Below are positions 15,251 through 60,100 of a DNA stretch of 64,000 nucleotides, in pieces; position 1 is the stretch's first letter, and every line of letters starts with the position of its first letter. Made by a program: the position numbers and the translations under genes. The stretch is taken from positions 62,001-126,000 of the IMG/VR virus record IMGVR_UViG_3300046323_000587; one strand, 5' to 3'. Below the pieces are notes generated by a model. That model was not told the origin of the DNA. It did not search any database and was given only the letters and a program-made list of their open reading frames with translations.

Positions 15251-16207
15251 ATGGCAGAATACAAATTTTTACCATTAACAGCAGCAGGAGAAGTCATTGA
15301 GCAAGATACTTTATTTGATAGTCCTTCTTCATTAGTTATGATTGCATTACCAAAACAAGGTAAAAGTAATTTATTGGCAGGGAATAAAAAATGTTTAATT
15401 GTCGATTTAGAAGGTTCCACTAATTATATAAAAGGTGCAATCGTATCAAAAGTTGTTATAGATGTATTAGAAGATTTAGATAAATTAACTATTGAAATTC
15501 CAGACAAAAATAATGAAAATCCAAAGGATCCAGCTAAATCTAAATTTATGTTGCGACCTATTTTTAATGTAGTTGCTGAACTTATTCAAGCAAATAATAT
15601 GATACAGTACAGAAAATTAGTTAAACAATGGAATCTTAAACAGTCTCCAGAATTAAAAAACCAGATTCATACTCTAGTAAAAAAAATGCCTTTTCCTGTT
15701 GTTGCTATTGATACTTTAACTTCTTTAAGCGAGGCAGCAAAATTATTAGCTTATAAATATTATATTATTAATAATCCTAAAACAACTAAATCTAATATTA
15801 AACTTGTAGATAATTATGGAGGACAACAATTTGTAAGAGAAGCTATGTTTGATATTAAAAATTTTATTGAAACTTTTGCAGCTCCTTTTATTATTTGGAC
15901 AGGGCATACAAAAGATAAAGTAATTAAAAAAGACGCTACAGATATTACTATCGCTGATTTAGATTTAGATGGAAAACTCCCTAATATTTTTACAACAACT
16001 TGTGACGCTATTTGCACTGTTTCAAGAGATGATGAAGGTGTTTACATGGATTTTTCTAATATACAAGGAAGTAGTGCTAGTAGAAGTACTTACATACCAA
16101 ATGAAAAATTGTTGATGAGTACACTATTTAAAACAGACGAAAAAGGAACGATTTCTACAAAACCAGAAACTTATTGGAACAAAATTTATCCAGAATTATT
16201 TAATTAA
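15251..16207 (+). CDS. P-loop ATPase (AAA_24/Sak4-like)
   Basis: ALPKQGKS, IVDLEGS, VAIDTLT, WTGH. Confidence 0.8.
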   Translation: MAEYKFLPLTAAGEVIEQDTLFDSPSSLVMIALPKQGKSNLLAGNKKCLIVDLEGSTNYIKGAIVSKVVIDVLEDLDKLTIEIPDKNNENPKDPAKSKFMLRPIFNVVAELIQANNMIQYRKLVKQWNLKQSPELKNQIHTLVKKMPFPVVAIDTLTSLSEAAKLLAYKYYIINNPKTTKSNIKLVDNYGGQQFVREAMFDIKNFIETFAAPFIIWTGHTKDKVIKKDATDITIADLDLDGKLPNIFTTTCDAICTVSRDDEGVYMDFSNIQGSSASRSTYIPNEKLLMSTLFKTDEKGTISTKPETYWNKIYPELFN

Positions 16208-22499: not shown

Positions 22500-22568
22500 T
22501 AAATATTCTAGTAAATATTTTAGTATCTCAATTCTTATTAATTCATTCATTTTAAACAAAATAATTCT

Positions 22569-23677: not shown

Positions 23678-24118
23678 TTGAATAAGATTTGTAAGAAATG
23701 TAAACAAGAACAACCTTTATGTGAGTATTCTTTTGATTTTGAAGCTGCTAAATTTAAAGAAACTTGTAATACTTGTACAGCAAATAAAATCAAAGAGAAG
23801 AAAAAAGAACTTACCAAAGAAGAGAATCAACGATTAGCAAATTATTGTTATAATTACAATATAACAACAGAAGAATATTATAAATTAGAAGAATCTCAAC
23901 ATTTTTTATGTTCTATATGCAAAAAACCTACACCAAATAAATTTTTTTGTGTAGATCACGACCATAAAACTTCTAATGTTAGAGGGCTTCTTTGTAAAAA
24001 TTGTAATTTAGGTTTAGGTCATTTTAAAGATGATATTTCAGTAATGAGTAGTGCAATAGAGTATATAAGTAAAAGTAAAGAATATCAAGTAAACGGTATT
24101 AATTTAAAACGAAAATAA
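23678..24118 (+). CDS. Endonuclease VII-family (His-Me finger) nuclease
   Basis: N-terminal CxxC..CxxC; CSIC...VDHDH..VRGLLCKNCNLGLG; TTG start. Confidence 0.85.
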   Translation: MNKICKKCKQEQPLCEYSFDFEAAKFKETCNTCTANKIKEKKKELTKEENQRLANYCYNYNITTEEYYKLEESQHFLCSICKKPTPNKFFCVDHDHKTSNVRGLLCKNCNLGLGHFKDDISVMSSAIEYISKSKEYQVNGINLKRK

Positions 24119-24135
24119 TTTAAAATACTTCAATT

Positions 24136-24363
24136 ATGTCAAATAATTCAATTAAAATATCTGATGAAGTGTATTATTTAGATCCTTATACAAAAGAAAA
24201 TACATCAGAATATTTAGGCAGAGTAACTAAAATAGTAGGAGATTCAGTAACAACTAGAATAGGAGATGGTTATACAATAACAAACATTAATTATTTAACA
24301 ACAAATAAACCAAGTATTTCTAATAATTCTACTAACAATAAACCTAATAAAAATGCTAAATAA
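24136..24363 (+). CDS. Small hypothetical protein
   Basis: 75 aa with a beta-rich pattern. Confidence 0.5.
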   Translation: MSNNSIKISDEVYYLDPYTKENTSEYLGRVTKIVGDSVTTRIGDGYTITNINYLTTNKPSISNNSTNNKPNKNAK

Positions 24364-25393
24364 TTCAAGTAATTCCAATAATTCAAGTAAATTAAATAAT
24401 TCTTTACAAAAAGCATACGAAACATTAATTAAAGAAGGAGATTCTAGTCTCCTCTCTTTTTATAAAGTATTTTATACAGGAAAATTAACAATAAATAAAG
24501 TAATTGAATACGAAACCTCAAACAATAAAAGTTTAGAAATAGAAGATTTATTTGAACAATATAATAATTCAATAAACAATTCTTTTAATTTATTTGAATA
24601 TAAGCCTCATTATTTAATTTATGATGCAGATGAAATAGCCTATTTAATAAGTTATATTTGTAAAGACGAAACAAAAGAAAATGTTATAAAAGAATCTATA
24701 GATAAATATTTATATAAGATACTAAACGAAAAAAAATTTACTCATTATATTGCTTATCTAAAACCTAATATGGCAACTTTTAGAGATACTTTAGGGAAAG
24801 CTAAAAAATATAAAGGAAATCGTACTGGAACTGCACCACAATTTTATTTAAAATGGAAAACTGTAATAGAAAACTATTTAATTGCTAAGTACCATTTTGT
24901 TAAACTAGATGTTCCTATTGAAAGTGATGATGCAGTATCTATAACAGCAAAAATGTGTAAACAACAAGGTATTAATTATACAATAGTAAGTAAAGATAAA
25001 GATTTATTGCAATTAGAAGGAAATCATTTACATTATGATACAAAAAATAAAGTTTGGAAGGATTTATTTGTATCTGAAATAGGCGAAATTACACTTATAA
25101 GTAAAGATAAATATTTAGCTACTGGATATATTGCTTTAATGTATCAATGTCTAATAGGAGATTCTTCTGATAATATTCAAGGTTTAAAAAATTACGGACC
25201 AAAAAAATCTTACGAAATATTGAAAGATTGTAAAACAAAACATCAATTATTGGGGAAAGTTTTAGATACTTACTACAAATACATAGGAAAGTATTGGGGA
25301 AAACAAATATTTAAAGAAAATTACTCATTAGTTAAATTGCTGGATCGTTATAATGAATTTAGTTTTACTCCAATTAAAAACATCGCTATTTAA
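24353..25393 (+). CDS. 5'-3' exonuclease / flap endonuclease (PIN-like, T7 gp6/T5 D15 type)
   Basis: DADEIAY, YKGNR, ESDD, SKDKDLLQ, GDSSDNIQG..GPKK. Confidence 0.88.
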   Translation: MLNNSSNSNNSSKLNNSLQKAYETLIKEGDSSLLSFYKVFYTGKLTINKVIEYETSNNKSLEIEDLFEQYNNSINNSFNLFEYKPHYLIYDADEIAYLISYICKDETKENVIKESIDKYLYKILNEKKFTHYIAYLKPNMATFRDTLGKAKKYKGNRTGTAPQFYLKWKTVIENYLIAKYHFVKLDVPIESDDAVSITAKMCKQQGINYTIVSKDKDLLQLEGNHLHYDTKNKVWKDLFVSEIGEITLISKDKYLATGYIALMYQCLIGDSSDNIQGLKNYGPKKSYEILKDCKTKHQLLGKVLDTYYKYIGKYWGKQIFKENYSLVKLLDRYNEFSFTPIKNIAI

Positions 25394-29104: not shown

Positions 29105-29189
29105 TCAAAATACCAAGTATTTTTATTAATAGTCTTAAATAATCAATAAATTAATAAGTCAATAAATTAACAAATTAAATTCAATATTT

Positions 29190-34740: not shown

Positions 34741-34771
34741 AACCTGTGACTGATGTTGCAGGTTTTTTTTT
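34741..34771 (+). terminator. Intrinsic terminator
   Basis: aacctgtgac-tgat-gttgcaggtt plus T-run. Confidence 0.8.
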
Positions 34772-34844
34772 AGCTTGATTTTAAATAAGTGTTTAAATTG
34801 ATTTTTTAAATTATTTTAGTTAATTATTAATTATTAAATTTTAT

Positions 34845-42613: not shown

Positions 42614-45600
42614 TTAAAAACAATTGTTTGTTATTCTATCTAATTCAATTAGTTTCTCCATTGATTTTTCAATAGTTTTTTTATTGAAAGTGTGAATAGG
42701 TTTAGTTTTTAAACTATTTAAGTCTACTTTAATACCAGAATCTCCTATTAAATCTAATAGTGTATATAAATCCATTGATTTAATTGTTTTATTGTTTAGT
42801 TCTAGTTTTGAAATATTTTGTTTAGGAAAAATATAAGAGAAAATTTTTTTAATTTCATCAAAGAATTTATTCACTATTTGATTAAATCTAGTAAAGAAAT
42901 TAGTTTGATTAGAATCTACATAAACTTTTGCTGTATTTTCACCTATTAATGTAGCAAATACTTCCTCTCCTAATAGCTCTGGTGATAAATTTTTATAGTT
43001 TGGTAAAATATCTTTTATAATATCAGTTCTTTCCAAAGATAAATTAATTATTTGTTGATACAATTCAGGATTTTGATTTTTAATTAAGTTTAATAAAATA
43101 TGTGTAATCTCGTGTGCAGGTGTTTCAAGATTTAATTTATTTGTATTAAGATATACAACATTATCATCAACCCAACCGTGCCAATTAACTCTCTCATCAT
43201 TAAATGTTTTTCTAATATAAGATTTATCAACAAATTGAATATCTAAACCAGGAATTAATGGTTGTAGCTTTTCAATGAATTGTTTCATTATATACATTTC
43301 AGTAGAAAAATCAGAAGTACGAGATTGCTTTTGGAATGGTATTTCAAGTGTTCGTAACACGCCTTTTGTATTTTTTGGTATTATTGAATATTCTGAATAA
43401 GTTTTCGAGATAGTTTCAAATTCTATATCCAACTTTCTATCAATCAATATATAAGGAACTTCTGTTGTAAACTCTACATTTAAATCAAAATTTTGATCCA
43501 TAATCTCTATTTCAGGATTAGTTTTAGCTAATTCTATATTTGCTTTTTCTTCTTCTGATAAATTAGTTAAATCAATATTATTTAATATACGAAGTTTTTC
43601 AGCTTGATAATCATCTTCTAAGTCTACTTCTTCCTCTACATTAACATTACTAACAACTTCTTCAATAGGCGTAACTTGTTCAACTACTTTTGGTACCTCA
43701 ATTAATTGCTCTTTTAAAGTTTCTTTTGTACGATTCTCTAGTGTAGATTTAGATTTCATTACTTGTCTAGCAAATTCACCAACCTCAATAAATTCAAATT
43801 GTCCAGTTTTATAAGGGTCTATTCTATTATTTAAAGTAATTAATACTTGTTCTTTTAAATCACTATTTGTAGGTAATAATACTCCTTCTTTTGGTAATAT
43901 TAATTGTCCTCCATACTGTTTAGAAGCTTGTTGAAATTTGTTTATATCTTCTATTGAAGTAAAACTAATTACATTAGGAAACTTACTTTTTTGAGTAGCA
44001 TTACTTATATATAAGTTATTTAAAGCAGAAGATTTTCTTTCAATTTCAAGTTTTGGCTTATTTGAAATAATATATTTATCGTCTAATGAAGTTGATTTAG
44101 GATTAACAGCAATACTATAAAGAGTTGAAGGTAATTGTGACATTAACTTTCCTATTTCTTTTGCAGACCTTCCTGTATTCATATCTTCTTCACTTAATAT
44201 AGGTACATTAGTTTTAATATCATTAGTAGTTTCTTCTATAACAGAATTTGCGTCAAATATATTAATACTTCTTTTATCTAATTCAGAATTAATTTTTTCT
44301 AGCTCAATTTTAGCTTGTTTAAAAGAAGCATTTGAATTAGAAATATTCTTCTTAGACATAACTTCTGAAATATCAGTCAATACAACTAAATGATCAACAG
44401 TTCTACTATAAGCAACATATAGAAGTTTTAATTTTTCAAATAAATTTTTATTAGTTGCAATATTTTTCTCTGAAACAAAGTTGTTTAAATAAGAAGAACC
44501 TTGAGCTGAATGTGCAGTTATGTTATACCCATAAAATGTATCTATGAAATTATAATGTTCTAAAACTTCATAATAAAGTTTACCATTATCAGTCTCATAA
44601 ACAAATTCTATGAAACTATTTACATTTCTTAAATTTTTGTTTACAGGGATTCTGAATATAGCTTTCTCTCCTAATTCAGTTGTAACTTCAAATTCATATA
44701 AAGGCATTGTATCCAAATCAGGTGTCAGATATTTTAATGTTGTAGGAACTTCAACAATTCTAGGAATAGAACTAATAATAACTCTTTGTTCTTTAACTAG
44801 ATTTAAAATAGGTGGCTTATTTGTTATTTCATCTTTTAAAGGATAAAAATCTTTTTGATTTAATATCAACAATTCACCAACATTAAAATCCTCTTTATTT
44901 GCACCAAAGATTCTCTTTCTTATTTCTTTTGTTATTCTAATATTGTTTAAGTGTTTACTATTATTATAACCAATCATAGCAACACTTCTTAGATTAATAT
45001 TTAATTTAATATTTCCTTTACTATCAAATACTTCTTGTTTATATAGTTTTACATAATCCTCAATAAAAGTATTTTCATCTTCTGAGAATAAATAAGTAAT
45101 ATTAGGTGTGTTTTGTTTTTTATTCAATAAAGCAGTTAATTCTTTTCGAACTAATTGTACAGTATCTTCTTGTGGGGAACCATTCACTGTTATTTGCATA
45201 GGTAATTTATACAATAGAATATGATTCAATCTTATTGTAAGAGCCTTAAAAGATTCTGCTGCTTTAAATAAGTCATCATATTTAGCTCTCATATTAATAG
45301 TTAATTCACTATATCTCTTTTCTACATTGTTATCACCAGATAATTTAGATATTTGATATTTATGATAAATTGAATCAATGATTTTATTATCTTGTTTTAT
45401 AGACATTCCCTCAACTTCAATTTCTTTTCCACTAGGTGAAGGTAATTGAGCAAAATCTCCTACAAATAATAGTTTAGGTATCTTATATTTATCATATTTT
45501 TCAGCTAATAAATTTAATCTTTCTTGAATTAAATCAAATAGTTGATTATTAGCTAAACTTAGTTCATCTATAATAATATATTTATATCCAGATAATTTTT

Positions 45601-48600
45601 TATAGAAAGCAGCTTCTCCATAAGTTATATTTTTTAATGTAGATGCTTTACCTTCTTCATAAACTAAACCAAATAAATCGTGAACAGTTACAGCTGGATC
45701 TAAGTTTAATTTAGAATCTCTTGAAACTTTATATTGCTCATTAGCTAAACTTATCTCTCCCACAGCTTTATTAGAAGTTGCATAAATACCTACTGTAGTG
45801 CCAGATATACCTAAAGTAAAGTTTTCTTCATTTGCAAGATTGTCTAATAATCTATTAATTAAATAAGTTTTACCAGTTCCGGCACCACCAGATAAGAACC
45901 AAACATTATTAAGATTGTAGAGATCTTCAATTTTATTAACACTTGAAGGACTTTTAAAGAACTTCTCAATTTCATTTGAAGCATTCTGTTGATCTTTATT
46001 CAAACCATTATTTAATAGTGGTTCTTCAACAACATTTTGAGATTTTTTTAATGCTTGTTCTGTATTATACTTTTTCACTAATAAATTACCTATTTCAGTT
46101 TCAGATAATTGTTTCTCTTGATTCTTAGCTGCCATTTTATCTTTAATAGCTTGAATACGTTCTTGTTTACTTAATACTTGTGAGTAGATTCTATTGAAAG
46201 GTTTAAATGGTGTAGTTACATCTTTTAATGCTGAATATAAATCTTTTAAAGTAGATTTTTCATTTAATATAATAGTTTTATCAGAAGTTGAAGAAACTAA
46301 TTGTGATAACCAATAGAAAAATTCTTTTGATTGTGTAGAGTTTGGATTAGATTGAATTTGTTGTGATAAAGATTCTATTGAGTTTGATTGAGTTGATATA
46401 AATTGTTGAAATTTTTGTATAGTTTCTGGCGAATTAAGAATTGTTACTTGGTTTTCATTTTCTACTATTATTTCATTATTATTTAATAAAAATCCATCAT
46501 ACTCATTAACATTGATATTACTTCTTTTTTCATCATATTCTAAATAAAGTTTTAGTTGTTCTTTATCAAAATATTCTAAACTTTTACTTTGGTTATATGA
46601 TAAGTTTTTAGAATCTAATATGTTTTTAACATTTACAACAACAGGTAAAACTACCATTAAATTTTCAATTTCATCTCCTACTTTTTTATACATATCAGAA
46701 GCAGAAAAATAACCTTGATTTGTAGCTGAATAATCCATAGCTAGTTGGAAATCAATAGAAGTGTGAATTGCTTTAGTTTTACTTTTTGTACCTTTTTTAG
46801 TAGTTTTACTTTTATCAAATTTATCAAATTTTGTATCCGTTCCGTGAAATAACACTTCTTTAACTTTACTATCAGGATAAATACTATTCAAAAATTCTTG
46901 TACCTTACTATCACTAGCAACAGCATAAACAGGTTCAAGTTGTTTTAATTCTTGAATATTACCTCGTTGTTGCTCAGTTAATTCTTCTCTAACTTGACTA
47001 ATACTATCAAATTTATCTTTATCTAAGTAATATAACTTTTGAACAAATCCGTGAGGAATATCTGACAACTTAACATCAGAATGTAACCCTTTATTATATA
47101 TTTCATCAGCTCTATTATTAATAGCAGTTATTAATTCTAATCCTTGTAAGTCACTATTAAGAAATTCTTTTTCAGCTATTTGATAAGATTCTTCTTTTGA
47201 TAATTTTAATACATCTAATTTAGGTGATAATATTAATTCATTATTCTTCAAAGCTGATTTTAAATCAATAGTTCCTTTACCATAAGATACAAATCTAGCT
47301 AAATCTTTAATAGTTGTAAGAGGTGAAATTTCTTTAATATCAATATTTTTCTTTTTAAATATAGCTTTTAAAGCAATTGACATTTCATTAAAGAATCTTT
47401 TAATAGCTGCAATTAATCCTTTATTTTTTTTAAAATCCAACTCTTCTTTAATGTATTTATCAATAGAGTGAGCAATCAATTCGTGTTCAAATTCTATTTT
47501 ATCTGCATTAGAATAATCTTCTTTAATTTTATCTACAAGTGATTTATCTTTAATAGCTTCTGTAACAAGATTACTATATAATTCTGGATTTTGTATTCTA
47601 GCAACTTCAATAAATGGATGTGAAAATGCTTCGTGAACAGTTGAATCAATTGTAGCTTGATTTTCTATTAGATAAGCTGTTTGAGTATCAAAATCAAAGA
47701 ATCCTTTTGAATTAGGTCTAGTAAATTGAGTTTCTGCTTCTTGTTCAGTAATAAATTTAGTTGGAATATTAAAACGAGATTCTAATTCAGTTGTTATTGG
47801 TTGTAGAGAATCTGTAATTACTTCTATCGATTGATTAGAGTTCTTATTTTGTCTATACACTCTTGAAGATTTGCTAGAAGATTCATCAAAAGAAAAATAT
47901 CTAAATCCTTTATTAGTAAATTTATATTTATCTTTTTTAAATGGTATAAAATATATTAAATCATTTAAATCTTTACTTCTACCCATATTAAGCTTTGCTT
48001 CAAAAATTTGTTTCCAGTCTTTCCAATAATTATCAAATATTTCTGGATAATTTCCTTCATCAGTTCTTAAAAAAAAGTCTAGGATATATTGTTTCTTTTT
48101 ACCTGTTTTTGTATCTATTTCAGTAGGGTGTTCTACATATCCTGTAATAGTTATACTTTCAGCATTTTTATGATCTTTTCCAATAAAAGCAGTTGTAAGT
48201 TTCCAACTAGGGAACATATTGCTAATATTACTATACCAAGATTGATTTTTTAAAAAAGGTATTATTTCTTTTAAAAATACTTCTTGACTTCTTGTCTGCA
48301 TTAATTCTAAACCTCTAGTTTTTGCCCAGTATCTAAACTCTTTATGATTTTGTTCTTTTTCGAATTGATTTAAAGTAATTACTCCGTCTATATCGTGTAA
48401 ATCTTCTGATATAGATCTTACTAATCTACCATATTTTCTAATTACTTGTGAACCAGATAATTTATAATCTACAAAAGGGTTATTAAATAAATCAGTAATA
48501 ATTTTTTTTGCAAAAGGATCTTTATCTAATGTTTTTTGATATTCTTTAGGTTCTAGATCACCTCCTTTAAAATCTGAAAATGTGCCGTCTGTATTTTGAA

Positions 48601-49642
48601 AATAGTTTCGTATAAATTTAGTATAATCTTTTTTATACACATCATCAACTATATCTAAGACTATATCTTTTAATTGCGACTCTGTGTAAGTATTTACAGC
48701 AACGTTATCAAATATATTTTCATTAATCCAATTCCAAATCTTAGCATAAATTTTCTTTATCCAATTTTGCTCATATTTGTTTTTATATCCTTTAGATTCA
48801 AAATAAGCCTTATCTAAATCTGGATTTTTACGCTTTTCTCCTATGTATTTATTATTATATCCTTCTAAAATAGCGTCAGAAATAAATTCTATTATAACTT
48901 GTTTATGAGCAAAAACATTAAAAGATTCAGATTGTCCGTACTCAATATCTTCAGATTGTTCTTCATATCCTTTTTTATAATCATAAGTATCATATTTATC
49001 ATAGATCTCTTTATATTTACTCCAAGTTTTAATATTTTTCCATATCTCTATACCTAGAAGAGATTTTTTACCTAAAAAAGTGTAAATAATGTTTGCTGTT
49101 TGTTTAGCTAAAACTTTATCGCCTATATTAGATTTTAAAGCTAAAAATTTTTGTAGTACGTCAAACGCAGCCAAAGTATTTCCAGAATTAAATTCTAAAT
49201 TATTTAATAATTCATCAGCATTTGTATCTACTTCTATATTTAGTCCTTTGATAAAGTCAATTAACTTATTTTCTAATTTACTATCAAATTCTTCTTTTTT
49301 AGAAAGTTCTTTTACTTCATTTGAATTAATAATTTGATTCCACTCTTCTTCACTAGCAATTCTAAAATCAATACTTAAATTACCCAAAGTCTCATAGACA
49401 ATAGGTAATTGAGCAATAGAAAGAAATTTATCAATATCTCCTTCGTATTTATTATAAATATTATAAGCAACATAAACTGCTTTTAATTTATCTGGTTCAA
49501 TAGATAAGATTTTTTTGAATTTATCTTTATCTAACATTAATAAATTAAATTCTTCTTCTGATAATCCTTCTTGATTTTGATTATAAAGAAGTTTATTGAA
49601 ATCTAATTTTACTGATGGATTTTTAAAATTTGGACAAAACAT
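42614..49642 (-). CDS. Large polyvalent protein: nucleotidyltransferase-like, zincin, ADP-ribosyltransferase-like, SF1 helicase, zincin
   Basis: 2342 aa; LSGS...DLHDIDG; HEAFSH; FHGT...FD.FD...YDG...E; GGAGTGKT, IIDE, GDFAQL, TAHSAQGS, YVAYSR; HEITH. Confidence 0.78.
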   Translation of the reverse strand: MFCPNFKNPSVKLDFNKLLYNQNQEGLSEEEFNLLMLDKDKFKKILSIEPDKLKAVYVAYNIYNKYEGDIDKFLSIAQLPIVYETLGNLSIDFRIASEEEWNQIINSNEVKELSKKEEFDSKLENKLIDFIKGLNIEVDTNADELLNNLEFNSGNTLAAFDVLQKFLALKSNIGDKVLAKQTANIIYTFLGKKSLLGIEIWKNIKTWSKYKEIYDKYDTYDYKKGYEEQSEDIEYGQSESFNVFAHKQVIIEFISDAILEGYNNKYIGEKRKNPDLDKAYFESKGYKNKYEQNWIKKIYAKIWNWINENIFDNVAVNTYTESQLKDIVLDIVDDVYKKDYTKFIRNYFQNTDGTFSDFKGGDLEPKEYQKTLDKDPFAKKIITDLFNNPFVDYKLSGSQVIRKYGRLVRSISEDLHDIDGVITLNQFEKEQNHKEFRYWAKTRGLELMQTRSQEVFLKEIIPFLKNQSWYSNISNMFPSWKLTTAFIGKDHKNAESITITGYVEHPTEIDTKTGKKKQYILDFFLRTDEGNYPEIFDNYWKDWKQIFEAKLNMGRSKDLNDLIYFIPFKKDKYKFTNKGFRYFSFDESSSKSSRVYRQNKNSNQSIEVITDSLQPITTELESRFNIPTKFITEQEAETQFTRPNSKGFFDFDTQTAYLIENQATIDSTVHEAFSHPFIEVARIQNPELYSNLVTEAIKDKSLVDKIKEDYSNADKIEFEHELIAHSIDKYIKEELDFKKNKGLIAAIKRFFNEMSIALKAIFKKKNIDIKEISPLTTIKDLARFVSYGKGTIDLKSALKNNELILSPKLDVLKLSKEESYQIAEKEFLNSDLQGLELITAINNRADEIYNKGLHSDVKLSDIPHGFVQKLYYLDKDKFDSISQVREELTEQQRGNIQELKQLEPVYAVASDSKVQEFLNSIYPDSKVKEVLFHGTDTKFDKFDKSKTTKKGTKSKTKAIHTSIDFQLAMDYSATNQGYFSASDMYKKVGDEIENLMVVLPVVVNVKNILDSKNLSYNQSKSLEYFDKEQLKLYLEYDEKRSNINVNEYDGFLLNNNEIIVENENQVTILNSPETIQKFQQFISTQSNSIESLSQQIQSNPNSTQSKEFFYWLSQLVSSTSDKTIILNEKSTLKDLYSALKDVTTPFKPFNRIYSQVLSKQERIQAIKDKMAAKNQEKQLSETEIGNLLVKKYNTEQALKKSQNVVEEPLLNNGLNKDQQNASNEIEKFFKSPSSVNKIEDLYNLNNVWFLSGGAGTGKTYLINRLLDNLANEENFTLGISGTTVGIYATSNKAVGEISLANEQYKVSRDSKLNLDPAVTVHDLFGLVYEEGKASTLKNITYGEAAFYKKLSGYKYIIIDELSLANNQLFDLIQERLNLLAEKYDKYKIPKLLFVGDFAQLPSPSGKEIEVEGMSIKQDNKIIDSIYHKYQISKLSGDNNVEKRYSELTINMRAKYDDLFKAAESFKALTIRLNHILLYKLPMQITVNGSPQEDTVQLVRKELTALLNKKQNTPNITYLFSEDENTFIEDYVKLYKQEVFDSKGNIKLNINLRSVAMIGYNNSKHLNNIRITKEIRKRIFGANKEDFNVGELLILNQKDFYPLKDEITNKPPILNLVKEQRVIISSIPRIVEVPTTLKYLTPDLDTMPLYEFEVTTELGEKAIFRIPVNKNLRNVNSFIEFVYETDNGKLYYEVLEHYNFIDTFYGYNITAHSAQGSSYLNNFVSEKNIATNKNLFEKLKLLYVAYSRTVDHLVVLTDISEVMSKKNISNSNASFKQAKIELEKINSELDKRSINIFDANSVIEETTNDIKTNVPILSEEDMNTGRSAKEIGKLMSQLPSTLYSIAVNPKSTSLDDKYIISNKPKLEIERKSSALNNLYISNATQKSKFPNVISFTSIEDINKFQQASKQYGGQLILPKEGVLLPTNSDLKEQVLITLNNRIDPYKTGQFEFIEVGEFARQVMKSKSTLENRTKETLKEQLIEVPKVVEQVTPIEEVVSNVNVEEEVDLEDDYQAEKLRILNNIDLTNLSEEEKANIELAKTNPEIEIMDQNFDLNVEFTTEVPYILIDRKLDIEFETISKTYSEYSIIPKNTKGVLRTLEIPFQKQSRTSDFSTEMYIMKQFIEKLQPLIPGLDIQFVDKSYIRKTFNDERVNWHGWVDDNVVYLNTNKLNLETPAHEITHILLNLIKNQNPELYQQIINLSLERTDIIKDILPNYKNLSPELLGEEVFATLIGENTAKVYVDSNQTNFFTRFNQIVNKFFDEIKKIFSYIFPKQNISKLELNNKTIKSMDLYTLLDLIGDSGIKVDLNSLKTKPIHTFNKKTIEKSMEKLIELDRITNNCF

Positions 49643-49661: not shown

Positions 49662-52600
49662 TTATATCATTGGTGGAAACATTCTAACAACTTCACTAGA
49701 AGACTTACTACCTAAACAAACTTCAAAAATATCTTCAGCAAAATCATTCAGCAAAAGTTTATTTTTATTTATATCTGAAATAATATTTTTTGTGTCTTCT
49801 GAGACAGGTTTTTCATTTAGGTTATCCCAAGCTTCAAAATGAGTTTTTAATTTATCTAATAATTCACTATTCAGATTACTCATTTGTAAATCTATTGATA
49901 AATCCTCGTCTATTTGACTTAGATAACTTAAAAAATTTAAATACTCTAAACTTTCTTCTGTTGATACAGGAAAAACTTTTTTCTCAAAATCTGTTGGATC
50001 TTCGTCATCTGAAATATATTCTTTACTATTATTTTTATTTATTTTTTGTTCAGTTAATTTTATTTTATTTGTTATAGATTCAATAGATGTATTTGATTGT
50101 GAAAGGTTTTTATTTTTTTTTAATTTAAAAGTATTTATAATATTAGATAATTGATCTTTACTTAACTCATATAAATTAGGGTTATTTTTTATTATCTTTG
50201 AACTCTCTTCTTTAATATAAGCAATCACACTATTAACTTCTGATTCACTATTTCCAATAACTTCCATAGAATTATCATCATTTAACTCCACACCATCAGC
50301 TATAAACTTCTTATTATCATAAGTAACTTTACTTAAAGTAATTGGTATTCTAGTGATAAACATTCCATTTTGTGAGATAATTGAAGTTGAGAATGAAGAT
50401 ATTTTATTTGAAGTAATAGAGTCTGTTGGTTGATTTTCATTGTATTCAATACTTATAATTTTATTTCCTGTGTGAGATTTATTTCCATATTGTTTTCCGT
50501 CTTTAACTAACCATTCAAATGTATACAAGCCTAATTTAGGAAAATTAGAAAAATCTTCTGTATTTAATATTGCTCCATAACCCAATTGCTTACTTATCAA
50601 TTCTTGAGTATTAATTTGTGAATACAATATGTCCCATTTATCTGCTGTTAGAATTTTAGGTATATTATTATTTTCAATAAATCCGTCTGGTAAAATTAGT
50701 AATATAACATTATTTAAATTTGTGTTCTGTAATTCTGTATTGTTATCAATTCTAGTATATGTACCATCTAAATTTTTATGTAATAGTGTTATTTTAGTAG
50801 GGTGTCCGCCCGATAAATTAGCACTTTGAAAATGGTACATAGCTTTACCTGTTTGTGAGGATTCATTGTAGAATAGCATTATATCTGTGGGATCTTTTAA
50901 CCCTTCCGCAACTCCGTCTACTGTTTTAAATCTTTGATATCTATTATCAGGCAACAAAGTATATATAGAACCTCTTTCTGTAATAAAAGATTTTACTTTT
51001 GGAATTGATTCTGTAATATTTTCAGGTTTTGTTATTGTTTGATTAACTGGTTCAGTTGTAATTGATTTATTATTATTCAATATCTCATCTAATTTCTTTT
51101 TCCAATTAGGTTTTGACATATTGATAGTAGGTATTCTTTTTCTTCTAGCCATTTCAACAGCTTGTCCTGTACCTCCAGCAACTCTTAAAGGATTAGAAGT
51201 TTCTTTAGCATAGAATAAAACAAAATCAACAGGTGTATCTAAATTTTCTCCAAATATTTGATTAGTATTTCTAGCCATAAGTTTTTTAGCTCCTTCTGTT
51301 AATTTATCAGGGGCAGGATGTATTTCTTCCATTACAGTCAATTCTTTTTTACCTACAGGTGCATTTACACCAAATAAATTCTTTTTAGTAGTTCCTAAAG
51401 AAAAAGCTCTATCTGCACCTTCTTCATCTAGTCCAACTTTTCCATTATTTTTCTTAGAAAAAGCTAATCTTTCCTCATATTGTTTTTGATATTTTGGATC
51501 GTTACTTGGTCTAGCAATAAAAGTTTTACCAGTGTTTAACGTATAACCTAAACTTTCTAAATATTTAGCTGCTTCTGTCATTAAATTTAATACATCTTCT
51601 GGGGTTTCTCTACTACCAATTCCTGCATAAGTCATAGTAGGTTTGTCTAATTTTGCAGGTAAAGAATTGAATATAGGTTTATTGCTATTATCCATTTTAA
51701 CTGATTCAGTTGAATTATCTTTATCAGATTGATTTGTAACAGAAGAAGTTTGAGTTGATTGTAGAGGTTGTACAGAATCTAACAATTGCTTTTCATTTAC
51801 ACTGTCTACTTTCTTACCTTGAACCTTTCTAAGTGTCCACACAACTCTGTAATCTTTTGTTTTAACTTTACCATTAAAACCTTTATCAATAGTCAATTCA
51901 GGAAACCCTTTTGGCATATCAAATTTATCTGTTTCTTTATCAAATACAATTTCGTGAAACACATTTCTATTTTCATTTGAAAACACCAGCAAAGCTCCAT
52001 TAGATAAGATAAATTCTTCTCTTTTTTCTATTGAATCTGCTAACACCTGTAATGTATTTTTTCCTGTTTTATCAGAAACTTTAATTCCTTTTGATTCAAG
52101 TAAATCACTGTATTTTATAAGATTACTAGGAGTTAATTGTCCGTAAACTATAGTTTCATTTCCTAATTTATTTTTACTCCTTGATAATTCAGGAGCTAAT
52201 TTATTTGCTATTAGTAAATTAGATATAGTATTTAATCTTATTTCATATTGATTTTTAAATCCAGTACCAAAATTAAAATTGTTTGAGTCTTTTAATTGAT
52301 AAGTAATAAATTTCATAGGTCTTCCTGCTGATATAGTGATGATAGGAGAAGTATTAAATTCAGTGTTATCTTGGTGGATTACAAGACTTCCTTTATCATT
52401 TTTATCGTATACAGAATTATAACTTGCATCATATTCACTGATATCTATACCTCTATTTGCTAATTCAGTTATTATTTCTGTAGGTATATCAGGTAAAGTA
52501 TTTCCATTTTTATCAATTGATGTATATACATATAAAGGAAAATTAGGTATAGACTTAGGGTCTTTACCAGACAATAATTGAGATTTCATTAATTCTGTGA

Positions 52601-54002
52601 TTTCTTGCCCACCTATTTCTTTACCTACTAAAATTCCTTTGTATTGAAGTTTTGTTAAGGTATTAGATCTTATCCATTGATGTCCGTAACCCCAAGACAC
52701 ACTACCACCTGTTTGTTTAAATGAAGTATCTTTAATAAATTCAACATTGTCTTCTACTAATTTAATAGTTGTTTCAAGAGGTATTGCATTTTCAATAATT
52801 ATAAGACCTTTCTCATTCTTGATTAATTTAGGCTTAGATGTTGATTGTAGAGGTTGTGTTTTATTCTCACTTTGATTAAATGGGCTTCTAGGGTCATTGA
52901 TTAAGAAATCCAAAGCAGTTGCGTGTGATGGTTCGTTAGCTTTATTTGCAGTAGTATTAGTGTAATGTAAAGGTTGTCCTTTTAATCTACCACTAAGTAA
53001 TTGTTCCCTAACCCATTCTGCTCTTGGTTCAGTAGAATTGATTATCCAATCTATATATTTAACTACACTTTCTTTTGTAGAAGTAGTTTTAATTAAGTCT
53101 TGTGAGTGTTTCTGATATATAGTTTGTTCACTAGTAAATTTATTGCCAAAGTGTGTATCCTTATTCTTAGCTCTCCAATCATATAACACGTCAATACCAC
53201 CTTGTTGTTTAATAACAGCTTCTCTACCACTATCTTTACCAAATACAGTAGTTTTTACATTTGCCGATTTATTACCTAATAACTTGTAAATATCACTAGC
53301 TTCTTCGTCTTCATTAGTATCTTGTAAATCTTGTTCAGTTTCTTCTATACTTTCTAATATAGCTTCAAATTCATCTAACTTACCAATCTCTTTATAATAA
53401 CTTCCAATTTCTCCTAGTAACTCATCCTTATTCTGACTATATAATTCAATAATATCTGCTTTACTTATACTAATAGCCAATCTAGGATATTTCTTAGTAT
53501 ATTCTAATTTTTTATCTATTCCACTATTAAACTCTGATTTGATACTATTTTGTACTATATTAAATAATTCAGCTTCATTTTTACTTGAATCATTATTAAA
53601 ACCTTCATCTGGAATTATAGTAAAATTATTTTCAAAAATAGAATAAATAAATTCTGGTTTAGTTTTTAAAAATTCTTCTAATATTATTGTATTATTTTTA
53701 TTATTTAATAACTGTTCAAAACTACCTTTAAAATTATTGATAGTTCCAGCTACTTGATAATTAACATCAATAAAATCTATTCCAATAATGCTCTTAATTT
53801 GAGATAAAGTAATTTTTTTTGTTTTATCTATAATTAAAGGGTTTTTATTGGTTGATATAAAATCAAATATAACAGGATTGACGTCTATATGGTTTTTAAT
53901 AGCTTTTTTTATTATAACTTCTTTATCAACTTCTGATGTATTTTCTGGAATATCTATGTCTATCTCTTCTATTCCATTAGGCAATTCAATACAAATTTTC
54001 AT
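49662..54002 (-). CDS. Large polyvalent protein: DUF4326-like, AlkB-like 2OG-Fe(II) dioxygenase, SLOG/DprA-like domains
   Basis: 1446 aa; FGNKF...YIDW...LKG..L...SHA; HQD...H...RVVWTLR; YAGIGSRETP, GADRAF, ARN, GGTGQA. Confidence 0.72.
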   Translation of the reverse strand: MKICIELPNGIEEIDIDIPENTSEVDKEVIIKKAIKNHIDVNPVIFDFISTNKNPLIIDKTKKITLSQIKSIIGIDFIDVNYQVAGTINNFKGSFEQLLNNKNNTIILEEFLKTKPEFIYSIFENNFTIIPDEGFNNDSSKNEAELFNIVQNSIKSEFNSGIDKKLEYTKKYPRLAISISKADIIELYSQNKDELLGEIGSYYKEIGKLDEFEAILESIEETEQDLQDTNEDEEASDIYKLLGNKSANVKTTVFGKDSGREAVIKQQGGIDVLYDWRAKNKDTHFGNKFTSEQTIYQKHSQDLIKTTSTKESVVKYIDWIINSTEPRAEWVREQLLSGRLKGQPLHYTNTTANKANEPSHATALDFLINDPRSPFNQSENKTQPLQSTSKPKLIKNEKGLIIIENAIPLETTIKLVEDNVEFIKDTSFKQTGGSVSWGYGHQWIRSNTLTKLQYKGILVGKEIGGQEITELMKSQLLSGKDPKSIPNFPLYVYTSIDKNGNTLPDIPTEIITELANRGIDISEYDASYNSVYDKNDKGSLVIHQDNTEFNTSPIITISAGRPMKFITYQLKDSNNFNFGTGFKNQYEIRLNTISNLLIANKLAPELSRSKNKLGNETIVYGQLTPSNLIKYSDLLESKGIKVSDKTGKNTLQVLADSIEKREEFILSNGALLVFSNENRNVFHEIVFDKETDKFDMPKGFPELTIDKGFNGKVKTKDYRVVWTLRKVQGKKVDSVNEKQLLDSVQPLQSTQTSSVTNQSDKDNSTESVKMDNSNKPIFNSLPAKLDKPTMTYAGIGSRETPEDVLNLMTEAAKYLESLGYTLNTGKTFIARPSNDPKYQKQYEERLAFSKKNNGKVGLDEEGADRAFSLGTTKKNLFGVNAPVGKKELTVMEEIHPAPDKLTEGAKKLMARNTNQIFGENLDTPVDFVLFYAKETSNPLRVAGGTGQAVEMARRKRIPTINMSKPNWKKKLDEILNNNKSITTEPVNQTITKPENITESIPKVKSFITERGSIYTLLPDNRYQRFKTVDGVAEGLKDPTDIMLFYNESSQTGKAMYHFQSANLSGGHPTKITLLHKNLDGTYTRIDNNTELQNTNLNNVILLILPDGFIENNNIPKILTADKWDILYSQINTQELISKQLGYGAILNTEDFSNFPKLGLYTFEWLVKDGKQYGNKSHTGNKIISIEYNENQPTDSITSNKISSFSTSIISQNGMFITRIPITLSKVTYDNKKFIADGVELNDDNSMEVIGNSESEVNSVIAYIKEESSKIIKNNPNLYELSKDQLSNIINTFKLKKNKNLSQSNTSIESITNKIKLTEQKINKNNSKEYISDDEDPTDFEKKVFPVSTEESLEYLNFLSYLSQIDEDLSIDLQMSNLNSELLDKLKTHFEAWDNLNEKPVSEDTKNIISDINKNKLLLNDFAEDIFEVCLGSKSSSEVVRMFPPMI
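51754..52857 (-). repeat. 18-bp direct repeat (51754-51771 and 52840-52857) flanking the AlkB-like domain
   Basis: gttgattgtagaggttgt occurs twice, 1086 bp apart (in frame), encoding QPLQST. Confidence 0.85.
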
Positions 54003-54122: not shown

Positions 54123-57100
54123 TTAGCAATCTTTTATTACACTTGTAGCATCAGAGTTTAAATATAAATCATATATATCTTCTAAACTATCTTCATCAAA
54201 CTCTATGGTAGAACTAACAGGTGTAGAATCAAATAAGATATTTTTATTGAAAGTAAATCCTTCAATAACTTGATTAGAAGAAGCTTTATTTATTATACTT
54301 AAAGCCATTACAAAGTTAAACAATTTTTGATTAGTTTCACTATCAATGGTATTATACTGTGATAATAAATTTAATAAATTGTATTTATTTTGAATAGTTT
54401 TTATTTCTACTTTATTTAATGGTTGTCTATTATTAGGTTTATTTAATTGGTTTCTTAATTCAGTTACTTGATCTAATAAAGTATTTTTATATTCTTCTGT
54501 AATGTTAAAAAGGTTTGTAATATAATCTTGCAATCTAGTAAAAATATTTAAAGTTCTTGTATCAAGATTTTCTGTATTTAAAGGTATTTGAGGGTCAATT
54601 ACATTAAATTGAGATTTATTTAATTGACTTACTTTTTCAATATCTTGTTCTAATAAAATCTCTTCAGTAGTATTAAATAAACTATTTACAATCTTTTCTT
54701 TTAAATCGTTTAAGTTTGGTTTAATAAATTTTATACTTTGAATTTTTATACCTTCAATTTTATCTTCTTTGAAACTCACAGCAGTTTGTTTTTCTGAACC
54801 TTCTTTACCTGTAATAAAAACCCAACCACCTAAATCTTGTGAATCTAATAAAGATAAAGGATTACCAATAAATTTAATTTTTTCGTATGTTGGAACATCT
54901 TTATTAGCAAAATAGAATTCTTCTTGTACTTTAATAAAATTAGAAGACTTACCTTCTCTATAAACTTCTCTTTTTGGATCATCTTTAACAGGAATTGAGC
55001 TACTTAAATAATTTAATACAATATTCATAGTGTTAAATTCCATTGTTCCTTCTACTGTTGGAATAAATTTAACAAAATCAATATGATATTTTTCTGGAAG
55101 AATACTTGCAAAACTAGATTTACTTGAACCAAACTTGCTTGTAATAAGAGAATACCAAGCAAACATATCAGTAATGTTGTAAGACCTTTGAGAAGTGTAA
55201 TCAACTACTGTTTTACCTTTATTAATATCTTGCTCTGTAATAGTAAATAGTTCATTACCTTCTGAATCTTTTGTTACTGTAAAATATAATCCTTGAATAA
55301 GTTCAAAAGCTTTTTTCATATTTACTGTAACTGGATTTATATCATTATTCATTTCTGAATCAGCAAAAGCAACTAATGGCTGAATTAAGATATTAACTTC
55401 TTTATTCAAATAATTTGTTGCTTCTTTTGGAACAAGACTATTTAATACAGTTTTATAGAAGAAATCTATTCTTTCTTGTGGACTTTTAAAATCTAATTCA
55501 CCATCTTTATCAAAAGGTAAATAATTTGAATTATTGCTTGAAATTCTCAGAAAATCTTTTAAGGGATTAAAGAAATGTTCTCTAAAACTATTAAAGAACT
55601 CTTCTCTATTAGTTTGACTGTTTAAAGATTGTTTATTGAAATCTGTTTGAAAATCATCTGTTTCTTTTCCAGTTATAACAAAAATTGGATTGTCTTTTGA
55701 ATTAGATTTCTTTTCAATATATTTTTCAGTTATTACACTATATATGTGGTCTAATATAGAACTAAATTCAACATCAGTTAAGTTAGGCAACTTACCATTC
55801 TTTCCTCTAAAATTTTGTAGGTTTTCAACTAGATTTGTAAGTTCTCTGAATACAAAACTCTTATTTTGCATAATATCATAAATCATTGAATGTTGTGTAA
55901 AATAGTTTTTAAAATGTTGATTTACTTCTAATGAATATAAAATAGGGAAAGCTTTTTTAGTTAAGTTACTATATTCAATATGATATTGTCTATACCAAGC
56001 AATGTTTTCATTAGATTTAGTGATTTCTGAAAGATTATTTGGATTATCTATTGGTTGTTTATTAAATAAATAAAAGTTAAATATTCTAGGATTGTATTTT
56101 TTAGTTATTCCATTTGATATAACTTCCATTTCAGTTTCATTTTTTCTTGGATTTAATAAGATATCTTTAATTTTAGCTAACTCATTTGGTGAAATATTAT
56201 CAGTTATATGATCTATAAAAGAGTTTTCAGTCATAGATATTCTCTGTTCAAGTGAAGCAGCTTCTTTTTCTTTATTTGTCAATAATTCCATTTGTTCTTT
56301 ATTTCTATAATCAATAAAAGGAACACCAAATTTAGTTTTATGAAATTTCTCGTAAGATTCATTAATAAAAGTTTCAATAGTATTATTAAAAGAGAAGTGA
56401 TCTTGAAAAGTTCCCTTATGACTTTGATTGATTCCTAACATTTTACCAAACATATTAAACTCCATTCCAACTTCAATCAATCCAACAAATTCTTTTAGTT
56501 TATATAAAGCTGTAGAATCTAGATTTTGAGTTCTATATAACCATTTATAAAAGTTTATTTCCCAAGTATTTCTACTACTTTTAGGTATATAATCTGTACT
56601 AGATAAAAGTCTTTTTTCGTATAAAATTATATTTTTTAAAGAATCTTTTTTTAATATAGAAAGTATATAAGAGTTATCAATTGTTTCAATTTCTTCTGTA
56701 TCTTTAAACCCATCAAATTTTTCTAGTAGTTTCTTTACTTTAATAGGTTTGTTTACTCTATAAGCAATTCTTAAAATATTCTGAATATCGTCAATTTCTG
56801 CAACAGATAATACACTTTTAGTAGTAGCGTTTTTCTTAAAATTTAATGTAAATTTATGTTTTTCTCCTTCAATATTACTAGAATGTTCAAACACCAGAAG
56901 AGATTTAACTTTTAAGTCTATTAGTTCTTTAATAGAATGTCCTGACTTAGTAATAAATAAATTATCATATTCATCAAACTCAATGTCAGCTAAAGTTTTT
57001 TCTTCAAGTTTTTTAATCAGTGAGCTATAAGTGTGTAAGAAGTCATTACTATTATCAGCAGCAACTTGTTTTGTTTTTCCATAAGAAGTTATACTATACT

Positions 57101-60100
57101 TATCATTTTCTATTTTAAGTCCAGGTACAGTAGCATACCTACCTACAACATCACCAATTTTATCAGAATTACCGTAAGTATGTATATCTGTTGATTTAGC
57201 TAATTCTTTAAATATAATATCAGCTTCTGGTGAAATTAAAATAGAGATGATATCTTCAACAGGTGTACCTAATGCAGTCAAAGCAGAAAATGTAGAAGCA
57301 GTATAAGAATTTAAATTCAATTTACCTAAAATCATTTCTTTTGCATTATCAGTTGCAGCAGACACAGCTTGAGAGATAGTTTCCCAAGCAGAAGAATCTA
57401 ATATAGTTTTAGATAAATAGAAAGCTCTTAATGTAGAAACTTCTTCTTCAATTGCTTTTTCTAGTTCTTCTCCTTTTAAACCTTTGGCAATTAATTTTTC
57501 TCTAATTTTAATTTTATTGTTACCAAATGTATCTTGCATATCTTTAGTAAGCTCATCAAAAGAACCTTTAAGTGTATCTGTAGAAATTTTTTCAAAATCT
57601 TCACCTCCTTCAGATAAAATTAATTTCACTGAAGTAAACATAGCTGAATCAATATGAAAACTTGCATTCTCCATAAATTCTTTCATAAATTTAAGTTGTT
57701 CTCCAAGTTGATTTAATCTTTTAGTTTCTTGCTCAGTTTTATTAGATTTACCTAATAATTTATCATACTCTTTCTGTTGTTTAGATTCATTTAACTTTAA
57801 ATTAGATGCAGAACTATAAAACTTAGGTACACCATCTTTATCAGTAACTTTAATAGCAGAAGCAGTAAAATCTTTTAATTTAGCTCCGTCTGACATATTA
57901 GTTCTAACAAAAGTTTGTTTAGGTACAAATACAAATCTTGAATCTGCATTTTTCATTGCTAGCATACTTGCATTAAAATAAATAGCATAAGCTTTCATAT
58001 CTTGTGCAAATATACCAGTTAATGATTTACCATCTCTATTTAAAGCAACCATAATAGCTTGATCCATTGAAGAGAATTGAGAAAAAGTTAATTTACCTTT
58101 AACAGATTTTTTAGATTGTGCTTGCATTGAATCCATTGAAATAGGTGAATTAGCTTGTACTCCATTTGCAGGATGTGTAATAATATCATACAATCTCTGA
58201 CTTATATAATTCTTATAAGCTTTTTGCCTGTATTGATTAGCTTTAAGCTTTTTTTCTTTAATAACTTTAATAGAATCTCCTTCAATAAGTTTACCTTTTT
58301 CATCTGTACTAGAAAGTTTTATACGAAATCTTTTAGGAAGAAATTGATCACTTTCAATAAAATCAACATCTAATTCTAAATCAAATGTTTCAGGTCTGCT
58401 TAAATCTATATCTTTATTCCATTTAATAAATTCACCTCTGTCAAAAGCAAATGCCATAATATTGAGTTTATCAATATCATAATCCGAACCTTGGAACCAA
58501 AGCATTTCTAATGGGTGATATACGGCATTACCTAAATCATTTTGAAATCCAACAACTTTCATACCAACATAAGACTGCATACCTTGTGCAGGAATACGAG
58601 CTCCAACCATCTCAAGAGATTTTTGAAAAGCTAGATATTTTTCTTTTGCTTTTTGTTGTAAAGATTCTTGAGTTTTAGAAGGCACAGTAAAATAAGTTTC
58701 TGATAGATTTTTGATCTTTTCTTCAACCATTATTAAAGTGTTATCAGATTGTTTAAAACTTTGATTAGTAGATAATAGTTTTTCTTCTTTTTGTTGTTGA
58801 AGTATTAATTGAAATTTTTGATTGTCTATTATAGAAATCTGATATTCTATTTCATCAAGTTTAGTTTGGTTTTTTGTATTAGATTTAGTTTCTAATAAAC
58901 TTAACCTTTCAATATCAATAGAATTAATTTTAGTTTGTAAGCCTTTTAATAAAGTTTTAGAAGATTTAATTGTATTATTTAATAGCCTGTTTGTTTCAGT
59001 AGCTTTATCTTTAAAAGTATTTAAATTTTTTAGTTGTTTATCTAAATCAATCAAATACTTTTTACCAGTTTTCTTAATTTCTTTTGCTTTCCAATCTCTT
59101 TCAAATCTAATGTAAAAATAATTTTCATTATACTGATCAATAGTGTAACCTTCTTCTAAATTAAATTGCGTTTTATACATTGAATCGATAATAACTTCAC
59201 AAGGATCAGTTTTATATCCCTCATCTGATAGATGTTTTTGTAATTTAGCTGTAGCAAATCTCCACATAATGTTAGAAAAAGATAATTTTGCTTTTGCTTC
59301 TTTATATAGCTTATAATCTGCACTATTTTGAAGTTCAACTTCTGAATCAGAATTTTTTGCTAATTGTTTATTTTTTTCTATGATTGCTTCAAGCTTTTCG
59401 TATACTTTAATAGCATTTTCTAAATCATTCTTAGTTTTTCTTACTTCTTCCATTAAAGGGTTAGTAAAACTTGCAATATTCCCTTCTTCATCAACTACGG
59501 TATCAGTCAAATATTCCCTATTTCCATCAATATCTCTATAATAACCAGTCCATTTTAAATTTCTAGATTTTAATGTTTTATAAGCTGGTGTTCCTTGATT
59601 TTCTTTAATCCATTTAGAATATACTTCTTGTGTACCTACTTCATCTTTTTCTAGTACTTTACCATTCAATACACTTCCAGCTGGAAAATCATATACTTTA
59701 ACAACATTATGACTTGGTGTCATAACCATTTGATTACCTGTGAATTTATGACGAATACCTTTCTTAGAAAAATCAGAAGCTAATTGAACAAATATACCAT
59801 TAAATACACTTTTATGTGAAATAAGGCTATTTACAGAAATTTTATCTTCATGTTTATCGTTATATTTATTTACAGCTTCAATTAATCTTGCAGTGCTACC
59901 TGATTTCTGATTAGCAATTACATCTTCACAAAAAGCACGAAATACTTCAACACCTTCTTCTTCTTTTGAAGGGTCTAATACAGTTTTCCATTCTTTAAGA
60001 TTAGAATCACCTAATTTAGCTAAACCTAATGCAACTTCATTTGCTAGTTCGCTTGTGTGCCCTTCAAGAAAGTTAGCTTGTAAAATTTGAGAAATTACAC

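Follow-up and report, generated by a model that had tools for sequence, protein, structure and literature searches.

Short linker DNA probably lets uncultured phages swap polyvalent-protein domains in frame: a private 18-nt repeat around an AlkB-like module and a 24-nt linker in relatives

How do phages shuffle the domains of their giant, multi-enzyme proteins without breaking the reading frame? This question is raised by a 64,000-nucleotide (nt) stretch of the IMG/VR virus record IMGVR_UViG_3300046323_000587 (positions 62,001 to 126,000; hereafter the window, meaning the whole stretch that was analysed). On its minus strand, an open reading frame (ORF) of 1446 amino acids (aa) carries an AlkB-like 2-oxoglutarate (2OG)-Fe(II) dioxygenase module between two exact copies of an 18-nt sequence. 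The initial annotation of this locus proposed that the linker DNA acts as a recombination joint for the exchange of effector domains. We find that these phages probably exchange protein domains in frame by way of short linker DNA, as indicated by a near-invariant 24-nt linker shared among related phages, here called the public linker. The 18-mer of the window is not a general joint of this kind; it is private to its phage.

The repeat, ACAACCTCTACAATCAAC, occurs in two exact copies 1086 nt (362 codons) apart (Table 1), just as the initial annotation described. Both copies are read in the same frame: the first base closes the preceding codon, and CAA, CCT, CTA, CAA, TCA and a final AC then yield QPLQST. 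No third copy is present in the window at up to two mismatches, and there is no similarity between the surroundings of the two copies beyond the 18 nt. Because peptide and frame are shared, the in-frame spacing follows automatically and is not independent evidence. The 18-mer has no internal symmetry, and its copies are direct and translated. A sister contig, recovered from another sample, shows 100% identity across 11.2 kb and contains the same pair. Given this contig, and given that 18 nt lies below the k-mer sizes usual in assemblers, the pair is not an assembly artefact.

Measured by information content (36.7 bits), the 18-mer is the most surprising exact direct repeat of the 64-kb window, which has a GC content of 24%. 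This value was reached anywhere in 64 kb by one of 100 order-2 Markov null sequences. Shuffling of the linker residues gave P = 0.0034 for any six-residue peptide common to two of the six linkers of the ORF. With QPLQST given, P is about 0.057 for identical codons; it falls to 0.012 for the codons actually used, among them the rare CTA-Leu. Several other exact repeats of 17–19 nt are dispersed through the window, and AT-only 17–19-mers recur by chance at 24% GC. The 18-bp repeat is real and is not due to chance.

Each of the two copies falls within a disordered linker or at its border, and these linkers flank a single AlkB-type domain, since the AlphaFold model (12-sequence alignment, pLDDT 79) folds aa 389–747 and leaves aa 370–388 and 748–780 disordered. 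Foldseek ranked E. coli AlkB first among the structural matches of this model (2fdk, E 3e-8, TM by target 0.72), with ALKBH5 and ABH2 next. The model has an AlkB-like double-stranded β-helix fold that can be superposed on AlkB, and oxidative demethylation of nucleic-acid bases would be the activity expected of such a domain. Across 12 aligned AlkB-like modules, H543, D545, H683, R719 and R725 are invariant, corresponding to the HxD...H iron triad and the RxxxxxR 2-oxoglutarate motif. Family membership rests on fold and motifs, because the match to Pfam PF13532 (E 2.2e-6, 28.5 bits) lies under the gathering cut-off of 31.2; a profile search against the PDB was marginal (E 0.035).

Upstream of the AlkB-like module lies module B, whose homologues match DUF4326 weakly (E 0.009–0.1), and downstream follows a DprA-like module. 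Segments poor in hydrophobic residues mark linkers at aa 217–237, 368–399, 742–777, 976–995, 1188–1207 and 1317–1342. The N-terminal 235 aa and the C-terminal 460 aa have no detectable homologues, and no close relative of the ORF was found. Among homologous proteins (P numbers), the tail behind module B in P0031 (SENK...TQPKSKS) is similar to the N-side linker ...SENKTQPLQST, and the C-side copy shares an alignment column with the QP-type linkers of P0002, P0028, P0029 and P0030 (alignment A1). A general QP-linker motif was considered and rejected: QP dipeptides number 103 against 101 expected, and their 2.4-fold excess in linker-like windows is a composition effect.

The public linker, ACTCAAYCAWCTACTAGTGTTAAA, is 24 nt long and reads TQ[PS][ST]TSVK. 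It has 33 exact copies on 29 viral contigs with GC contents of 0.26–0.42, where about 0.02 copies would be expected by chance according to a rough estimate of our own that assumes a collection of at most ~1e11 bases. Every copy lies inside a long ORF, always in one frame, and the copies link many different upstream and downstream modules. Linkers of this type were located at junctions in 41 instances, and 679 comparable pairs of instances have both flanks unrelated. Four contigs carry two copies, separated by 396, 453, 744 and 783 nt, all multiples of three. The loci (L numbers) are L051–L079, L081, L082, L005, L046 and L047.

The initial annotation suggested testing whether synonymous sites in linkers are over-conserved, and in the public linker they are. 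In a scan for the 24-mer with five fourfold degenerate sites left free, 24 of the 27 matches had the consensus base at all five sites, compared with 2.4% predicted from codon usage; two others, of the same sequence, had one synonymous change, and the last was an unrelated chance match. The binomial P of 5e-36 for 24/27 overstates the case because the instances are related. In 12 instances with a homologous downstream module, synonymous codon differences amounted to 1.4% within the linker versus 23% in the next 20 codons, and the variation inside the 24-mer mostly changes amino acids (P/S, K/E, T/I). The conserved island comprises the 24 nt plus 2 nt upstream and has sharp edges. Its invariant core also holds the 6-nt palindrome ACTAGT, the only one in the linker.

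Recent breakpoints of homology fall at or close to this element. Comparing the flanks without gaps, on loci that are contig fragments, we identified seven contig pairs in which one flank is 89–99% identical over 150 nt and the other is unrelated. The switch between the two states falls at the linker in six of these pairs and about 16 nt past it in L056/L069. Nucleotide alignments were made for four of the seven: in three the switch coincides with the first linker base, and in L056/L069 the offset is reproduced. In these pairs, breakpoints thus lie at TQP-linker DNA or within about 16 nt of it; the 18-mer has no close relative for such a comparison.

One relative reproduces the arrangement of the window. 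In L077, two exact 24-mers (7766–7789 and 8510–8533, 744 nt apart) lie inside an ORF of 2914 aa and bracket a complete 2OG-FeII_Oxy_2 domain (PF13532, E 2.9e-14, above the cut-off). Its AlkB-type domain is only 25–32% identical to that of the window, and L077 independently repeats the observation of an AlkB cassette bracketed by linker DNA. A region of this ORF further resembles gp66, the virion RNA polymerase of Cellulophaga phage phi14:2, and there are matches to crAss-like phages as well; P0020, in turn, adjoins a vRNAP_dom_2 gene.

P0005 and P0006 are about 95% identical in nucleotides, and P0006 has an extra DUF7831 module of 150 aa within a TQ-type linker, bounded by VTQPTTSVKP on the left and KPTQSSTQAQ on the right, at the place where P0005 has a single linker. 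The two diverge fully straight after the DprA-like module, where P0005 reads ATTQPSISVEK. When all short DNA matches between non-homologous protein contexts were compared, all against all, in 16 genes, TQP linkers came out on top. Within P0005, two in-frame stretches 600 nt apart agree at 25/26 nt and enclose a module, and P0002 matches P0005 over 25/26 nt and P0006 over 21/21 and 27/29 nt. The P0006 linker further matches the linkers on the C side of AlkB in P0029 (25/27 nt) and P0028 (17/17 nt).

A peptide, EGVSELFESNPELAN, often follows the linker (L053, L059, L062, L067, L069, L071, L077–L079 and L081) and runs on into at least three module families (IGTPEQYSQYLD..., AVYEALGF... and QVYE...). 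It is possibly a separate adaptor or mini-module, as its conservation is at the peptide level only (23% synonymous differences).

Architecture varies among the homologues. At least 14 architectures contain the AlkB module, in proteins of 221–6005 aa and at varied positions; for the DprA-like module the count is at least 20, and for module B about 12. AlkB homology begins at KP.L[LI]KNE.GLII and ends right after YRVVLTLRKV.G...(K/Q)L. The DprA-like block of the window (51070–51681) is 83% identical in nucleotides over ~600 nt (blastn) to genes P0005 and P0006 (L046, L047), which come from other metagenomes, and this similarity stops abruptly at both linkers, but not at the 18-mer itself. The nearest relatives of module B are P0038 (62%) and P0007 (49%), both without an adjacent AlkB; in P0002, whose AlkB module is 62% identical and among the two closest, module B is only 24% identical. 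These discordant relatives point to discordant histories on the two sides of the N-side linker. Since architectures are not fixed and homology ends at linkers, domain shuffling with breakpoints in linkers is supported.

The AlkB module of P0003 (L007:56-3580) forms the C-terminal end of that protein, stopping at YRVVLNLNYF, and the second conserved Arg is absent; the next ORF begins 2 nt further on. P0002 starts just 7 residues ahead of the public linker. The layout of P0003 suggests that polyvalent genes can be split at module boundaries. A weak KETS motif flanking the DprA-like module in P0018–P0022 was dropped as a candidate repeat, as it reached only 11/12 nt.

How would such a system work? 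Independently mobile modules (DUF4326-like, AlkB-like, DprA-like and others) are joined by predicted disordered linkers in one polyvalent-type protein, which may be packaged and injected. Related uncultured phages, of which at least one is crAss-like, carry the TQP-type linker family as the near-invariant 24-nt element. Homologous or annealing-type recombination inside a linker could then take place between co-infecting genomes or within a gene. With the same short DNA in the same frame at many junctions, any upstream module can be joined to any downstream module without a frameshift. Each exchange would copy the linker, so that copies stay identical while their flanks diverge, a form of concerted evolution. 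The recombination would be performed by the Sak4-like annealing protein of the phage or by host functions. Phages are known to undergo deletion between short direct repeats, and the Sak4-like protein, the exonuclease and the endonuclease VII encoded in the window (Table 1) could supply short-homology recombination, their part in linker exchange being conjectural.

Within this scheme, we think it reasonably likely that the repeat of the window is a diverged, lineage-private pair of TQP-type recombination joints, belonging to a mobile-module polyvalent protein. Membership of the 18-mer in the same linker family, and its origin by recombination, are inferred from short, low-complexity sequence. 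The pair would most likely record an exchange or homogenisation around the AlkB-like module and leave that module deletable or replaceable in frame.

Several observations weigh against this interpretation. Among viral contigs, the 18-mer was found only on the contig of the window and on its 100% identical sister. The matches in metagenome contigs (20) and genome contigs (10) are single copies in non-homologous contexts, mostly with stop codons in the QPLQST frame. Across all three sets of contigs there was neither a single-copy deletion junction nor reuse of the 18-mer at another junction, so the single-copy junction that the initial annotation proposed to look for was not seen there. Its further suggestion that other linkers of the window (ENQPTDS, DSLQPITT, STQSNS) are similar fails at the DNA level: these linkers are dissimilar, and the window has 7 near-copies of the 18-mer at up to five mismatches, with 5.25 expected. 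The public 24-mer is absent from the window, where matches at up to eight mismatches are at chance level. The tie between the two elements consists of a short peptide resemblance and an alignment position in low-complexity sequence; the N-side linker TQP(LQ)STSKP resembles the public TQPSTSVKP as a peptide, but uses different synonymous codons.

Other points on the same side concern the history of the locus and the statistics. Between the 18-mer copies, five complete synonymous codons agree, as does the third position of the codon before them, and this codon identity is only mildly improbable given the peptide (P 0.02–0.06). Across 11 other carriers of this AlkB module and four carriers of module B, no flanking peptide is repeated. 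The adjacency of the DUF4326-like and AlkB modules recurs in P0002 and P0004, two diverged homologues, which makes a simple recent insertion between two pre-existing copies unlikely. Nor does composition give any sign of recent acquisition, the GC content at third codon positions of the AlkB segment (0.138) being inside the range of the gene. The 24-mer instances are not phylogenetically independent, which qualifies their statistics. Finally, lengths of 18–24 nt come close to the minimum at which recombination is efficient in well-studied systems. Taken together, the proposal that linker DNA serves as a general recombination joint is supported by the 24-mer, with its 41 junctions, its breakpoints and L077, and not by the 18-mer itself, which is found nowhere else.

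Several of these observations fit a one-off scar, namely a single template switch or short-patch conversion on CAACCT (QP) microhomology, or the remnant of a duplication, with no continuing role. QP is native to both linkers in homologues, after AlkB in P0002, P0028, P0029 and P0030 and after module B in P0031, P0038 and P0040, so the microhomology would have been at hand. The 18-mer is private, sharp-edged and limited to two copies, and the lack of a flanking repeat in every other carrier of the AlkB module agrees with a single event. Against such a scar stands the recurrent, recombination-linked bracketing of modules by identical linker DNA in relatives, which makes a coincidental look-alike less likely. 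We regard a one-off scar as unlikely, although it deserves serious consideration.

A stronger version of the joint hypothesis would make the TQP-type linker a dedicated nucleotide-level recombination site in an intragenic, in-frame domain cassette system, maintained by selection on the DNA or recognised by an annealing factor or nuclease of the phage, its invariant core holding the palindrome ACTAGT. This system would have another, lineage-specific site in the QPLQST pair. If this were true, polyvalent genes would be programmable arrays; we consider it improbable.

The conserved unit might instead be the peptide: QPLQST and TQPSTSVK could be protease sites that free the domains after packaging or injection, with DNA identity as a by-product. 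The motif does occur at domain junctions in disordered linkers, the neighbouring ORFs contain HExxH motifs, and polyvalent proteins have been proposed to be autoproteolytic, with DdrB of phage P1 processed before packaging (PMC5512222). A peptide signal nevertheless leaves both the near-zero synonymous change in the 24-mer and the predominance of amino-acid-changing variation there unexplained. QPLQ, moreover, is found at just two of at least six junctions in the 1446-aa ORF and nowhere in four neighbouring giant ORFs, and no peptidase family was detected. A protease site as the whole explanation seems to us decidedly improbable, and such a role could coexist with one in recombination. As for chance or composition, by which two Q/P/S/T-rich linkers in an AT-rich genome would come to share 18 nt, the other 17–19-nt repeats of the 24% GC window and the lack of overall QP enrichment lend it some colour, but it is very remote given the top rank of the repeat by information content (1/100 nulls window-wide) and a combined probability of 0.0034 x 0.057, or about 2e-4, before both linkers are even required to flank one module.

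Table 1. Coordinates of the 1446-aa ORF, its modules and linkers, and candidate recombination genes in the window
Feature	Position	Strand	Remarks
Whole ORF, multi-domain, polyvalent-type	49662..54002	-	1446 aa
N-terminal part			aa 1-235; no homologues
Module B, weakly DUF4326-like (HFGN...PSHATALDFLIN)	52896..53297	-	aa 236-369; mobile among polyvalent proteins
N-side linker	52839..52895	-	aa 370-388; few hydrophobic residues; predicted disordered
N-side (upstream) 18-mer copy	52840..52857	-	QPLQST aa 383-388; linker between DUF4326-like and AlkB-like modules; AlphaFold pLDDT <50 for aa 370-388
AlkB-like 2OG-Fe(II) dioxygenase module	51780..52838	-	aa 389-741; large insertions
C-side (downstream) 18-mer copy	51754..51771	-	QPLQST aa 745-750; start of post-AlkB linker; model disordered from aa 748
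C-side linker	51681..51779	-	aa 742-774; S/T/N/Q-rich; predicted disordered
DprA-like (SLOG) module	51048..51680	-	aa 775-985; PHROG 768, E 3.6e-43
C-terminal parts			aa 986-1446; no homologues
Sak4-like single-strand annealing protein	15251..16207	+	PHROG 124, E 6.6e-8
Exonuclease	24353..25393		PHROG 107
Endonuclease VII	23678..24118		PHROG 2633

The ORF belongs to a contig of 226 kb with 24% GC and no cultured relative by DNA. Genes of the window, including those at 15251–16207, 20304–23579 and 26297–30131, encode RIIA-like and RIIB-like proteins, both ribonucleotide reductase subunits, the Sak4-like protein, endonuclease VII, a primase and a DnaB-like helicase. The DNA polymerase is seemingly split between two plus-strand ORFs (10423–12177 and 12499–13080, about 320 nt apart) that match positions 658–1070 and 1079–1194 of the PHROG 17 profile; Rfam returned no match in the window, introns included.

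Further giant ORFs surround the 1446-aa ORF on the same strand. One of 2342 aa (42614–49642) has HEITH at aa 2177, an ART-PolyVal match below the cut-off (E 9.3e-5) and a PIF1/Dda-like helicase. Another, of 1824 aa (35478–40952), has HEIVH at aa 176 and a PD-(D/E)XK nuclease. These HExxH motifs could be zincin-like peptidase sites, a reading based on the motif, with no family match in support. The ORF at 54123–63989 has at least 3288 aa and probably runs beyond the end of the window. We rejected it as a virion RNA polymerase, finding no Pfam or PHROG match, no DxDGD and no match to phi14:2; all that remains is a weak match in the ESM Atlas (score 0.70) to RdRP-like phage proteins.

Next in improbability after the 18-mer, among the exact repeats of the window, comes TGTTGCAGGTTTTTTTTTA (19 nt, 34.9 bits; 34754–34772 and 41528–41546). 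One copy is intergenic and the other lies within ORF 41144–42580; it may be a terminator-like element. Short tandem repeats were also observed at gene ends (4651–4677 and 19393–19417), with TAAGTAA repeated about four times and TAATTTAA about three times.

In-frame shuffling of polyvalent domains has hitherto been unexplained, and recurring identical linker DNA with breakpoints offers a concrete, testable mechanism. The linker could serve as a marker to delimit modules in giant phage ORFs whose function is unknown, as a means of tracing domain flow between uncultured phages, and, in phage engineering, as a natural template for modular proteins. For the window, the mechanism predicts gain, loss or replacement of the whole AlkB-like module.

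Comparison with known systems places the findings in context. Polyvalent proteins of phages and conjugative elements were described by Iyer, Burroughs, Anand, de Souza and Aravind (2017; PMC5512222), who raised the possibility of cassette-based recombinational variability. Such proteins unite several unrelated enzymatic domains in one giant polypeptide with highly variable architectures, and the ORF of the window fits this description. Related features are the weak ART-PolyVal match in the neighbouring ORF and the NADAR, LPD38 and helicase domains in homologues (LPD38, PF18857, in P0024). However, AlkB, 2OG, dioxygenase and linker do not appear in the text of PMC5512222, and a conserved in-frame linker joint is not described there. 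TQPSTSVK and DUF7831 appear in no paper of the literature collection searched, and AlkB-like enzymes have been noted only sporadically in jumbo phages (PMC7824862). Compared with the E. coli AlkB/ALKBH family, the module of the window has the same fold, iron triad and RxxxxxR motif, but only ~12% identity and ~150 extra residues in insertions, and it is embedded in a 1446-aa protein.

In polymorphic toxin loci such as CdiA-CT and Rhs, homologous recombination exchanges toxin cassettes at a site marked by a conserved pre-toxin motif (VENN, PxxxxDPxGL). The likeness is that in-frame homology comes from a short conserved coding stretch bordering a variable domain. Whereas toxin genes have one junction each, at the C-terminal tip, together with orphan cassettes, the public linker recurs at many junctions inside genes, on either side of modules, and does so across many genes and phages. 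Cassette recombination in polymorphic toxins is also mentioned in PMC5512222.

The exchange of tail-fibre and antireceptor domains is similar in that repeated motif DNA flanking a variable domain of a phage protein is thought to be a recombination site. Tetart and co-workers reportedly found in 1998 that gp37/gp38 of T-even phages exchange at conserved motifs. In Streptococcus thermophilus phages, according to a passage in PMC5601072 that cites Duplessis and Moineau 2001, antireceptor domains are separated by collagen-like repeats. These are, however, host-recognition proteins with other motifs and usually longer or tandem repeats, and they are not known to have a universal single linker with invariant synonymous sites. 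Integrons (attC/attI) and shufflons (sfx) also have short repeated sites that bracket exchangeable cassettes, a likeness in outcome only. They need a dedicated recombinase and symmetric sites, whereas the linker repeats described here are direct and translated, and no integrase or recombinase was found among the 34 ORFs of the window scanned against PHROGs. Exchange at conserved boundary sequences is already known from such systems; the notable result is the public linker in the relatives, of which the repeat in the window is a modest, private example.

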